Below, piece after piece: positions 25,801 to 26,941 of a stretch of 64,000 bases of DNA. The stretch comes from Ranitomeya imitator. Taxonomy: Eukaryota. A program made the position numbers and the translations under genes. The notes under the pieces were generated by a model. That model made no database searches, was not told where the DNA came from, and saw nothing but the letters and a program-made list of their open reading frames with translations. Location: positions 233,244,001 to 233,308,000 of the forward strand of contig NC_091283.1 of the NCBI RefSeq assembly GCF_032444005.1, read 5' to 3'. The stretch's first letter is position 1; each line of letters begins with the position of its first letter.

Positions 25801-26941
25801 CACCTTCTTTATGCCCCCTCAGTACTCCTGTCACGCACCCGTTTTCCTCCCCTGTACACCTGCTTTGTGCCTCTGGTCTCACCTTTACACTTGCCCTGTT
25901 CTACTGCCCCGCGCCCCTCATTTGTTCCCGTTCTGCTTCTATTGGGGGTGAATTCTGACTTTGACTTTCTAGGATTGAGGTGCCTTTTGCGGCCCCGCTA
26001 CTGCACTAGGGGTGTGAGTCGGTGGGATGCAGCACAGGAGGGGTTCCCGGGCCAGATACTTTGTGGTGAGCAGTCCCCCGCAGTCCCATACTGGGAGGAT
26101 GAGCCTCCTCCTTATGTTACGGACGGGTACACAGAGCATGCGGGTGACGCCATGAAGCTGGGCCGACGAGAGAGCACAAGGGCAAATTTCCTAAAGCCAG
26201 AGATCTCCCTACAGCGGCTGCAGGTGAGGGTTGGCTGATGGTCCTCATCTTGGGGTCCCGCCCGCTGGCAACTGACCTGCTCCTCTCGTCTCTGCAGGCT
26301 GCTGGCAGTATCATCTCCATTGTGTTTGGGCTGAAGAGACTGGCGTGGGCCCATGTGGACCGGACCCTGACTGTGAGAGACTGGCAGCAACACGAATGGT
26401 CCCAGGTGACAAAGGCGCGGCAGCACCCTGACCTCTACCTGGCAGATGTAAGTGGAATTTACATGGGGCTGCTGGAGTCTGGGCCGTGTTTGAGCTTGTG
26501 TCCTCTCCGCAGGTGTCCTCCGCCGTCTCTAGGCTCCCGGCCGCCGACATCTACATCCTGGAGAAAAGCTCGCTGTCTGCCCAGAATGCCGCCATGTTTC
26601 CCGTCACCCTGCACTTGCGGGTAGTGGAGGCCATGTTGTTCGTACTGCTGAACCCGGACTACGCTGCAGAGCAGGAGCACAGAGTGTTCAGCGTGTCCCG
26701 GACCACTGTGGGGAAGCACTTTGACATTATGGTGGGTGGCACGAAGACGAGCGGCGTGGACTTGGTGCAGCGGTTGGTGGAGGAGGCAAGCACGCGGGAG
26801 CAGCCGCGTGTCCGCTTCACCCCGGAGCTGATCGCCCATTACAAGCACAGACTGCACCCCCACGGCCAGCATCGCCACGAGGAGATGTGTGACGCTCTGC
26901 TGCAGGCCATCGCTGTACTGGAGCTGGCCGGGCACCGCTGA
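4832..26941 (+). CDS. TEFM: Transcription elongation factor, mitochondrial; join(4832..4865,25973..26223,26298..26447,26513..26941), 864 nt, 287 aa
   Basis: Spliced protein [19 protein letters not shown]...[12 protein letters not shown]|[21 protein letters not shown]...|[18 protein letters not shown]...[16 protein letters not shown] resembles human TEFM (MSGSVLFTAGERWRCFLTP; LKPDIERERLK; [18 protein letters not shown]; LLQAIAFYEL, recalled). All junctions GT-AG, phases 1,0,0; tail-to-tail with ATAD5 as in mammals. Confidence 0.93.
4890..6354. repeat. CCTCATATACCCCCATATATCGCT-type minisatellite (~23-24 bp); continues at 16709-16985, 20811-21056, 23406-23460 and 25090-25200 between TE insertions
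   Basis: The same unit resumes after each TE insertion. Confidence 0.92.
6368..8521 (-). repeat. PLE 3' pLTR copy A
   Basis: Near-identical to 12726-14574 (direct) and 14579-16695 (inverted). Confidence 0.9.
8008..8054 (-). ncRNA. Hammerhead ribozyme remnant (pLTR A) with an 18-nt deletion removing the cleavage triplet and the stem I 3' strand
   Basis: Core and stem II intact; reads GAAACGC-GACGAAC instead of GAAACGC-GTAGGGATGGCGAGATGG-GACGAAC. Confidence 0.75.
9132..11951 (-). pseudogene. PLE ORF2: reverse transcriptase + Cys linker + GIY-YIG endonuclease; two small frameshifts (~10830, ~10505) and one MITE insertion
   Basis: Pieces 12026-10830, 10825-10500, 10500-9847 and 9462-9132 join into one RT-EN frame after correcting the lesions. 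Confidence 0.9.
9463..9843. mobile_element. PIF/Harbinger-type MITE inserted in the PLE endonuclease region
   Basis: TIR GGCT(G/A)(T/A)GT(T/G)CACACGTT, TTA TSD at both ends; its removal restores NCKTEGVVY. Confidence 0.9.
11900..12718 (-). CDS. PLE ORF1, 272 aa, intact; predicted helical/coiled-coil middle, Ser-rich and basic C-terminus
   Basis: ATG 12718 (MAGFLSG), stop at 11900; contains [22 protein letters not shown]; no recognised domain name. Confidence 0.75.
   Translation of the reverse strand: MAGFLSGSLNTSSWLDEAREVFSETEGDTGPTGSPSLKTLFSDLQTTYKENIKSWWEIQSLDNYIKQGIVPRGLRINITPAQRVKSDRLLERWEKESIASSLKFMQILLEEEKGTFEVSSKKLREQIDEILKHKTVGDFASKEENLKVAVDKYKAALKERKHKKFLRDLTEFKEKRAYLFTDTNAGNGRPSTRADISSSDVETSDSDFQPRDAFRPYRRFKAKNKRGNSARWRGPVRGETNMPPSSGTSSAVPSFLENRDIRYHLRGRTVTH
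12726..14574 (-). repeat. PLE 5' pLTR copy B (direct repeat of A, lacking one ~265-bp internal unit)
   Basis: Sequence identity by inspection. Confidence 0.9.
14109..14156 (-). ncRNA. Minimal type I hammerhead ribozyme (pLTR B), intact
   Basis: AUCCC CUGAUGA GCCCCU-auacuggga-AGGGGC GAAA CGCGUA^GGGAU: stem I, catalytic core, stem II and short palindromic stem III. Confidence 0.88.
14579..16695 (+). repeat. PLE inverted pLTR copy C
   Basis: Reverse complement of A/B; ORF track shows mirror-image ORFs 12850+ and 16614-, and 14534+ and 14668-. Confidence 0.9.
15046..15093 (+). ncRNA. Minimal type I hammerhead ribozyme (pLTR C), intact, sense to TEFM pre-mRNA; predicted cleavage after 15088
   Basis: ATCCC CTGATGA GCCCCTATACTGGGAAGGGGC GAAA CGCGTA GGGAT. 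Confidence 0.88.
16988..20808 (-). mobile_element. Tc1 transposon (DD34E), interrupted by a CR1 LINE; transposase 20443-20331 + 18098-17189 with a premature TAG
   Basis: TIR CAGTGCCTACAAGTAGTATTCAACCCC, TA TSD; WSDETK / FQQDND / NPIENLW with 34-residue spacing. Confidence 0.93.
18099..20326 (+). mobile_element. 5'-truncated CR1-type LINE (ORF2 RT, degenerate)
   Basis: [37 protein letters not shown]; 3' tail AATAACTATAACT; possible AACA TSD. Confidence 0.9.
21059..23403 (-). mobile_element. Tc1 transposon; transposase 23001-22969 + 22260-21271 (340 aa, second catalytic D mutated to G), interrupted by a DIRS remnant
   Basis: TIR CAGTTATATG.AAAAGTTTGGGCACCCC, TA TSD; WTDETK / FQQGND / NIIEHLW. 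Confidence 0.92.
22261..22968 (+). mobile_element. Internally deleted DIRS1-like (tyrosine recombinase) retroelement retaining both ITRs, the ICR and the YR C-terminus
   Basis: Left ITR 22261-22375, right ITR 22835-22968; ICR 22612-22695 complementary to both ends joined; [27 protein letters not shown]; T-rich insertion site without TSD. Confidence 0.85.
23464..25082. mobile_element. LTR-like repeat related to the solo LTRs at 33633 and 46696; boundaries uncertain
   Basis: Shares GCACCTAGGATAA.TAGT.G.C.GA.AGGCTGCC with 46870-46906; no convincing TSD. Confidence 0.45.
23859..24177. mobile_element. PIF/Harbinger-type MITE
   Basis: TIR GGCTAGGTTCACATTGCGTTA, TAA TSD. Confidence 0.88.
25200..25915. 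repeat. Degenerate pyrimidine-rich minisatellite (CTTCTCCCCCTTGTACACCTG) directly upstream of TEFM exon 2
   Basis: Direct inspection. Confidence 0.8.
25973..26223 (+). CDS. TEFM: TEFM coding exon 2 (251 nt, shortened)
   Basis: Acceptor tttctag|GA, donor CAG|GTGAGG; begins LRCLLRP and ends [12 protein letters not shown], both matching the ends of human exon 2. Confidence 0.85.
26298..26447 (+). CDS. TEFM: TEFM coding exon 3 (RuvC-like CTD start)
   Basis: ctgcag|GCT...GAT|gtaagt; [28 protein letters not shown]. Confidence 0.95.
26513..26941 (+). CDS. TEFM: TEFM coding exon 4 (to stop TGA)
   Basis: ccgcag|GTG; [28 protein letters not shown]; TGA 26939-26941. Confidence 0.95.
   Translation: MSSAVSRLPAADIYILEKSSLSAQNAAMFPVTLHLRVVEAMLFVLLNPDYAAEQEHRVFSVSRTTVGKHFDIMVGGTKTSGVDLVQRLVEEASTREQPRVRFTPELIAHYKHRLHPHGQHRHEEMCDALLQAIAVLELAGHR

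Follow-up and report, generated by a model that had tools for sequence, protein, structure and literature searches.

A natural TEFM without the helix-hairpin-helix domain in Ranitomeya imitator and other hyloid frogs

TEFM is defined by having a domain of the helix-hairpin-helix (HhH) type together with an RNase H fold (PMC3105396; Minczuk et al. 2011), and the HhH domain has been treated as a constant part of the protein (PMC3105396, PMC4357710, PMC11001877). A 64,000-nucleotide (nt) stretch of the genome of the frog Ranitomeya imitator (NC_091283.1, positions 233,244,001 to 233,308,000 of the forward strand; the whole stretch is called the window here) raises the question of whether a vertebrate can do without it. 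An original prediction, made from the letters alone, had proposed that the TEFM gene in this window is a natural form without the N-terminal domain (NTD) that retains its targeting peptide, linker and C-terminal domain (CTD). The TEFM of Ranitomeya imitator lacks the HhH domain, which is of DNA-binding type, and the evidence for this, its distribution among frogs and its probable origin are presented below.

The TEFM gene of the window has four coding exons, which encode 287 amino acids (aa).

4832 to 4865, + strand: coding part of TEFM exon 1 (34 nt), with 11 residues and base 1 of the Gly-12 codon, followed by a GT donor at 4866.
4866 to 25972, + strand: TEFM intron 1 (21,107 nt), filled with repeats and with no HhH-coding sequence.
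25973 to 26223, + strand: TEFM exon 2 (251 nt), which encodes the remaining part of the putative targeting peptide, a proline-rich acidic spacer and the linker between the domains, but no HhH body.
26298 to 26447, + strand: TEFM exon 3 (150 nt), the beginning of the RNase H-like domain.
26513 to 26941, + strand: coding part of TEFM exon 4 (429 nt), with a TGA stop at 26939-26941.

All splice junctions are canonical. Exon 2 has AG/GT bounds and a frame that is open and continuous with exon 1, which confirms the earlier description of a 251-nt exon that is open and in phase; its translation begins with LRCLLRP and contains all of the residue strings that had been quoted for it. Joining the four exons reproduces the 287-aa protein of the original prediction. 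Over its C-terminal 216 aa it is identical to a Ranitomeya imitator database protein, and the whole protein has 89% identity with the TEFM of Dendrobates tinctorius, which is likewise 287 aa long. The 3' untranslated region (UTR) reaches at least 27900, to which RNA contigs extend and past which they continue.

Transcripts of this gene are present in public data. Parts of 25900-27000 occur in 19 RNA runs from eight studies, and 14 of the 19 contain at least half of the sampled words of this interval (best 0.60-0.76, compared with an exonic fraction of 0.75). Contigs from four runs (four studies) were placed on 22000-27900. The joints from 26223 to 26298 and from 26447 to 26513 were seen in every one of these runs, with exons 2, 3 and 4 spanned by a single contig in three runs and by two contigs in the fourth, and the contigs match exon 2 continuously with zero mismatches. 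One contig carries 27 letters ahead of exon 2, AGGAATCATGAAAACTCTGATCAGCGG, whose sole occurrence in the window is at 4837-4863 in exon 1; exon 1 is thus spliced straight onto exon 2 with nothing between them. RNA depth is at or close to zero over 24364-25939, in the final ~1.6 kb of intron 1, and a SMART template-switch adaptor sequence is present in one run, which together indicate that the contigs are spliced cDNA rather than genomic DNA.

Several further observations concern the introns and ends of this gene. About 1 kb up to the exon 2 acceptor (24930-25955) is pyrimidine-rich, open in two forward frames and without RNA coverage. It includes a tandem-repeat array of ~0.5 kb at 25217-25745 (units of 33, 65 and 132 nt) that ends ~230 nt before exon 2 and might influence splicing or assembly stability; the acceptor at 25973 is cleanly used in transcripts despite this array. 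Repeat copies of intron 1 at 22000-24300 have RNA depths of hundreds to thousands, compared with 20-80 on TEFM exons, and their joints are non-canonical; this signal comes from expressed transposable-element families and not from TEFM exons. Intron 1 is 275 to 3538 nt long in other hyloids (275 nt in Dendropsophus and 1279 nt in Eleutherodactylus), and the TEFM gene spans 18 kb in Dendrobates tinctorius and 31 kb in Phyllobates terribilis compared with 2.6-5.5 kb in Eleutherodactylus, Dendropsophus and Engystomops. Intron 1 makes up nearly all of the gene span in the window, and its expansion therefore seems to be characteristic of dendrobatids and to have no connection with the domain loss. 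The transcript contigs contain two exon 4 variants that are probably polymorphisms: 26927 G>T (run X1), by which Ala-283 of the C-terminal tail would become Ser, and 26881 G>A (run X5), which affects a third codon position. A 6050-nt RNA contig extends ~4 kb beyond 27900, which points to either a long TEFM 3' UTR or read-through toward the convergent gene ATAD5.

Searches for the HhH domain gave consistent results at the levels of protein, locus and clade. The 83 aa of exon 2 match no Pfam family, even at E≤10, and the tandem HhH NTD (PF12836 / PF00633) was not found in Ranitomeya TEFM. A TEFM-NTD profile was built from the HhH region of 16 full-length TEFMs. With each of these proteins it scores E=1e-36 to 1e-44, and in the six-frame translation of the 64 kb nothing matches better than E=0.4, at 380-604 on the minus strand, outside the gene and intron 1. 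When 16 full-length TEFMs were compared by tblastn with all 64 kb, only exons 2-4 were recovered and the remainder was noise at E>0.1. The profile gives negative bit scores for every hyloid TEFM and finds no match in the loci of Engystomops, Eleutherodactylus and Dendropsophus (introns plus 3-kb flanks). Exon 2 of Mixophyes, which served as a positive control, is matched at E=3e-35.

The segment of the frog protein that precedes the RNase H-like domain contains the following parts.

26026 to 26148, + strand: acidic spacer, residues 30-70, with 9 acidic, 0 basic and 6 proline residues; it stands in the place of the HhH and is fast-evolving.
26113 to 26148, + strand: tentative candidate for a remnant of HhH helix 1, residues 59-70 (12 residues), which resembles [VIL][DN]xxY[TS]xEQRD of full-length TEFMs.
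26149 to 26223, + strand: basic interdomain linker, residues 71-95, with 6 basic residues; it aligns to human TEFM from residue 153.

Residues 1-29 (6 basic, 0 acidic) align with the N-termini of other TEFMs, and their composition is as expected for a putative mitochondrial presequence. The spacer that follows is predicted to be disordered. Its identity between Ranitomeya and Dendrobates is 76% compared with 93% in the CTD, and between hyloid families ~39% compared with 77%, and it contains insertions and deletions. An acidic aromatic-proline motif, PYWE[DE]xxPPP, occurs in the dendrobatid, leptodactylid and eleutherodactylid proteins; Dendropsophus has a degenerate version and Bufo and Hyla have none. 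The linker segment aligns with human KLLKPDIERERLK, and its FLKP motif is conserved in all aligned TEFMs. An alignment of 35 sequences has 18 invariant columns, and vertebrate-invariant columns are retained in the hyloid linker and CTD.

AlphaFold2 was run on the Dendrobates ortholog with this 35-sequence alignment. Residues 1-80 of the model are coil without secondary structure at a predicted local confidence (pLDDT) of 40-62; the linker forms short strands, with block-mean pLDDT of 51 for residues 71-80 and then 84 and 93 over residues 81-100. From about residue 81 onward the model is an RNase H-like domain in which most 10-residue blocks have a mean pLDDT of 84-97, with one dip to 69. The model superposes on the CTD of human TEFM (5OL8) with a template-modelling (TM) score of 0.91 and a root-mean-square deviation of 2.3 Å over ~201 columns, with RuvC-type resolvases as the next matches, and a structure search matched the N-terminal 80 residues to nothing. 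In phmmer searches against human TEFM chains the frog linker and CTD match at E ~1e-58 from human residue 153; this match and the TM score of the model identify a RuvC/RNase H-like pseudonuclease CTD, to which the Pfam family Ydc2-catalyt gives a weak match in Ranitomeya TEFM (E=0.043). The CTD, through which the frog protein would form a homodimer, is conserved in both fold and sequence. Pfam, the profile, transcripts, the structure model and the match to human TEFM agree in supporting a natural NTD-less TEFM with linker and CTD, as had been proposed.

The missing part can be located by comparing the coding exons of TEFM among frogs, in order from exon 1 to exon 4.

Mixophyes fleayi: 34, 425, 150 and 432 nt.
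Ranitomeya: 34, 251, 150 and 429 nt.
Engystomops: 34, 290, 150 and 435 nt.
Eleutherodactylus: 34, 305, 150 and 423 nt.
Dendropsophus: 112, 221, 150 and 426 nt, annotated from an upstream ATG.

Exon 3 has a length of 150 nt in each of the five mapped species and exon 1 is 34 nt in Ranitomeya, Mixophyes, Engystomops and Eleutherodactylus, whereas exon 2 measures 221-305 nt in hyloids and 425 nt in Mixophyes, the closest of the available frogs with a full-length TEFM; these sizes place the change in exon 2. The difference between Mixophyes and Ranitomeya is 174 nt, or exactly 58 codons. Pairwise DNA alignment of the two exons is saturated in mid-exon and does not place the deletion. At the protein level, full-length TEFMs carry, ahead of the FIKP linker motif, a pre-segment of 57-70 residues (targeting peptide and acidic spacer), the first part of helix 1 (Y[TS]xEQRD), a 58-60-residue body closing with C-D-S-[IM]-L and a tail of 16-24 residues. 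Hyloid TEFMs have a pre-segment of similar length; in several families [VI]xxxYTExxGD comes next, with a 13-22-residue tail behind it. This layout fits a single in-frame deletion of the body from the Asp of helix 1 to the Asp of the last helix. Local-mode hhalign supports the alignment of the candidate helix 1 remnant (probability 91%, E=1e-6), its spacing is consistent across species, and in a motif shuffle test it reached a convincing p=0.003 in Eleutherodactylus and a marginal p ~0.04 in Leptodactylus and Ranitomeya. A second candidate site for the motif is present in Bufo and Leptodactylus. The net loss of the HhH domain body is clear from these comparisons; we infer the breakpoint positions and the single deletion. 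The earlier statement that the segment bears no trace of an HhH stands for the domain body, which is absent, although "no trace" may be slightly too strong given the possible helix 1 remnant [VI]xxxYTExxGD. No alternative frame of Mixophyes exon 2 resembles the hyloid spacer by eye, which lends no support to a frameshift origin.

A database search of annotated proteins with the TEFM of Bufo bufo, in which PF12836 and protein length were compared, established the distribution of the short form, and superfamily assignments to Hyloidea were confirmed by NCBI taxonomy.

Hyloidea, complete models (Bufo, Leptodactylus, Engystomops, Hyla, Dendropsophus, Dendrobates, Phyllobates, Eleutherodactylus): 275-303 aa, PF12836 absent.
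Hyloidea, N-terminally shorter models (Ranitomeya, 216 aa; Anomaloglossus, 224 aa): PF12836 absent.
Non-hyloid frogs (Pseudophryne, Mixophyes, three Ranoidea, Xenopus, Rhinophrynus, Bombina): 311-369 aa over the whole non-hyloid amphibian set, PF12836 present.
More non-hyloid amphibians (Discoglossus, Ascaphus, Spea, Leptobrachium, Pelodytes, Ambystoma, Microcaecilia): within the same 311-369 aa, PF12836 present.
Amniotes and fishes, many: mostly 310-391 aa, PF12836 in nearly all.

Short TEFMs without PF12836 thus occur in 11 hyloid species of six Hyloidea families (ten species besides Ranitomeya imitator), and full-length, PF12836-bearing TEFMs in ~16 non-hyloid amphibians, including two Myobatrachoidea, a salamander and a caecilian. 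Exceptions outside Hyloidea are two partial frog models and one lizard entry, all three without a recorded domain, and a short snake isoform that is annotated alongside a full-length one. The HhH signature is present even in the most distant TEFM homologs that an exhaustive search recovered, so that its conservation reaches from these through fish to mammals. A maximum-likelihood tree groups the short TEFMs in one clade (100/100), with Myobatrachoidea as its sister group inside Neobatrachia, and one change suffices to explain the pattern of short and full-length forms. The alignment of orthologs by which the original prediction had proposed to date the loss confines the short form to Hyloidea, with full length in Myobatrachoidea; the loss is real and extends beyond this species to every sampled member of Hyloidea. 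Three TEFM isoforms are annotated in Hyla sarda: one (225 aa) skips the 150-nt exon 3 and would lose the first RNase H-like strands, and another has 25 added residues after exon 3.

Identification of the gene as TEFM is also supported by its position. In the tree, Ranitomeya TEFM falls within Dendrobatidae at the position expected for the species, and the gene lies tail-to-tail with ATAD5.

38963 to 61525, - strand: exons of ATAD5 (ELG1), of which three open frames were examined (38963-39769, 42376-42906 and 59738-61525).

The exon at 42376-42906 contains the Walker-A motif, with a match to human ATAD5 structures at E=7e-14 and a Pfam AAA match, and the open frame at 59738-61525 encodes 596 aa. 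At the Engystomops TEFM locus, a gene for a 1742-aa AAA/ELG1_C protein occupies the corresponding tail-to-tail position, and ATAD5 is also the neighbour of human TEFM. On the basis of a tree that follows accepted frog relationships, ATAD5 synteny and the sizes of exons 1 and 3, the Ranitomeya gene is a true TEFM ortholog.

With gene structure, transcript, domain absence, clade distribution and orthology established, the TEFM of Ranitomeya imitator is very probably a true, expressed and intact ortholog that lost its HhH domain in-frame in the stem lineage of Hyloidea and kept its core function. Its product would consist of four parts, namely a basic targeting peptide (~1-29), an acidic spacer of ~40 residues, a basic linker and a dimeric RNase H-like pseudonuclease domain. 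The tandem HhH would have been removed by in-frame loss of ~58-60 codons within exon 2 after the split from Myobatrachoidea and the short form inherited by every sampled descendant. Short TEFM would still clamp mitochondrial RNA polymerase on downstream DNA and suppress premature termination, and the contribution that the HhH makes in other animals would be either dispensable in hyloids or provided by other means. In polymerase structures the human TEFM chains begin near residue 135-139, so that the frog protein keeps everything that is seen acting on the polymerase, and a model based on 5OLA omits the first 145 residues (PMC9950373). In human structures it is the linker and CTD that are visible on the polymerase, and these two are strongly constrained, with CTD identities of 93% between dendrobatid genera and 77% between hyloid families, from which we infer that the elongation and anti-termination function is retained. 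Only five substitutions in the linker and CTD are fixed in the clade (K109R, L173M, N209T, E221G and Q260H); a specific compensating surface in the CTD was considered and set aside because these are too few.

Some points weigh against this interpretation. Even in a tree of the linker and CTD alone, no internal branch is longer than the stem of the short clade (0.34 substitutions/site), which may mean that function shifted rather than was simply kept. The helix 1 remnant is not significant in the motif shuffle test in the other six of nine hyloids, and MAFFT anchors the alignment on HGA[FV] against HGPF ("HG(A/P)F") where hhalign anchors it on YTExxGD, so that the breakpoints differ between methods. 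For hyloid TEFM, binding to POLRMT, raised processivity and prevention of termination at CSB II are proposals based on the conserved linker and CTD. Finally, searches for an HhH elsewhere covered the 64-kb window, three other TEFM loci and, by word index, annotated proteins; a search with the Pseudophryne NTD region passed 11 candidates and returned just Pseudophryne and Mixophyes, and a word index is insensitive for this domain.

This last point leaves some room for a second gene that supplies the HhH function in trans, whether a split-off HhH protein standing alone or a diverged paralog at another site of the hyloid genome; it is the most credible of the rival explanations, though we regard it as improbable. 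A full-length paralog had been named by the original prediction, together with a hidden HhH exon in intron 1, a collapsed or misassembled exon 2 and a divergent HhH, as something that might undo it, and within the scope of the searches each of these four checks came out in its favour. The search with full-length Bufo TEFM returned the short TEFM alone for each hyloid species, with no full-length paralog among the annotated proteins of ten hyloid species searched by word index, and the sole extra hyloid entry is a 158-aa Engystomops fragment without PF12836. A profile of 14 long-TEFM N-terminal halves likewise found no hyloid among the NTD-like annotated proteins of ~80-250 aa, which come from Pelobates and Hymenochirus (both TEFM fragments) and from one unnamed protein of metagenome source. 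The long stem branch could also be read, along with the fast-evolving spacer and its insertions and deletions, as a sign of relaxed selection on a gene that is only partly functional or is becoming a pseudogene. Such decay is very unlikely: the frame is intact in 11 species of a deep clade, splice sites are canonical in Ranitomeya, many runs contain its spliced transcripts, the CTD rate after the stem is no higher than in other frogs (end branches of 0.04-0.26), and vertebrate-invariant columns are kept with only the five clade-fixed substitutions.

An artefact would account for the short exon 2 if the assembly had collapsed or if an HhH exon had been missed in the 21-kb intron, which is unusually long and repeat-rich and has the tandem array of 25217-25745 close to exon 2. 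This explanation is already contradicted and has next to no probability left: spliced contigs of four studies run unbroken and collinear through exon 2 without mismatches and one of them is tied to exon 1, neither tblastn nor the NTD profile finds an HhH in any frame of the window, and a like architecture is present in the separately assembled genomes of ten other species, with a short intron 1 in Eleutherodactylus and Dendropsophus. It is no more credible that the 40-residue segment is a strongly diverged yet folded HhH, as the possible helix 1 remnant YTExxGD and an HGA[FV] string resembling the HGPF hairpin might suggest. With ~58-60 of ~75 domain residues missing the segment is too short, it receives negative bit scores from the NTD profile and lacks PF12836, its 6 prolines, 9 acidic and 0 basic residues are predicted as coil at low confidence, and its length differs by tens of residues among hyloids. 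Beyond the preferred reading of an in-frame loss with core function kept, the loss might have been more than neutral trimming and have come together with rewired mitochondrial transcription in the hyloid ancestor, a speculative extension that we consider unlikely. If it were true, the burst of stem substitutions in the linker and CTD and the PYWE[DE]xxPPP motif would represent compensation, and RNA-processing coupling or the origin RNA-to-DNA switch, which are proposed roles of the mammalian NTD, would be handled differently in hyloids.

The remainder of the window contains repeats and candidate fragments of mobile elements. A 334-aa open frame at 935-1936 (-) has a retrotransposon gag domain (PF03732, E=3e-6) and lies immediately upstream of the TEFM promoter region; open frames at 30141-31079 (+) and 49908-50720 (-) resemble fragments of Tc1/mariner-type transposases by eye, and a reverse transcriptase-like fragment at 36798-37770 (+) contains FADDTKL. 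Tandem repeats with long open frames lie between ATAD5 exons at 40.3-41.1 kb, and an assembly gap of 179 N occupies 35526-35704.

Hyloidea comprise roughly half of all frog species. Their TEFM provides evidence from living animals that the HhH domain is not indispensable to a vertebrate. Structural work accounts for the linker and CTD; the HhH domain is absent from TEFM models built on the polymerase complex, and its cellular role is speculative, with contact with POLG as one suggestion (PMC11807126). Among top-ranked full-text results of a literature search, no paper paired TEFM with any frog term and no mention of the loss was found; TEFM itself is known, and its natural, clade-wide NTD-less form is new. 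Myobatrachoidea and Hyloidea provide a ready comparison for HhH function, and hyloid TEFMs are natural sequences for complementation in TEFM-deficient cells. For annotation, short hyloid TEFM models are correct and should not be "repaired".

Compared with canonical vertebrate TEFM (human Q96QE5; 5OL8, 5OLA, 8U8U, 9MNA), the frog gene is the same by descent and has a similar linker and pseudonuclease domain, but an acidic, proline-rich and probably disordered spacer stands where the canonical protein has a tandem HhH (PF12836). Spt6 and bacterial Tex, which act in transcription elongation, also pair HhH motifs with an RNase H fold of the YqgF/RuvC type (PMC3105396), and Spt6 chains are weak structural matches to the Dendrobates TEFM model; these distant relatives differ in being much larger, multidomain, remote and outside the TEFM group. 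The closest full-length relatives are the TEFMs of the Myobatrachoidea Mixophyes fleayi and Pseudophryne corroboree, which have ~63% CTD identity and a matching exon layout and, unlike hyloid TEFM, keep a complete HhH. There is also a likeness in architecture to engineered truncations of human TEFM (5OLA, 8U8U), which start at ~135-139, are HhH-less like the frog protein and correspond to it from frog residue 71 onward. Hillen et al. (2017) reportedly found that the NTD is dispensable in vitro and that truncated human TEFM keeps its anti-termination activity. The frog form differs from these constructs in being natural and apparently fixed since the hyloid stem, and in keeping a putative targeting peptide and an acidic tail of ~40 residues.

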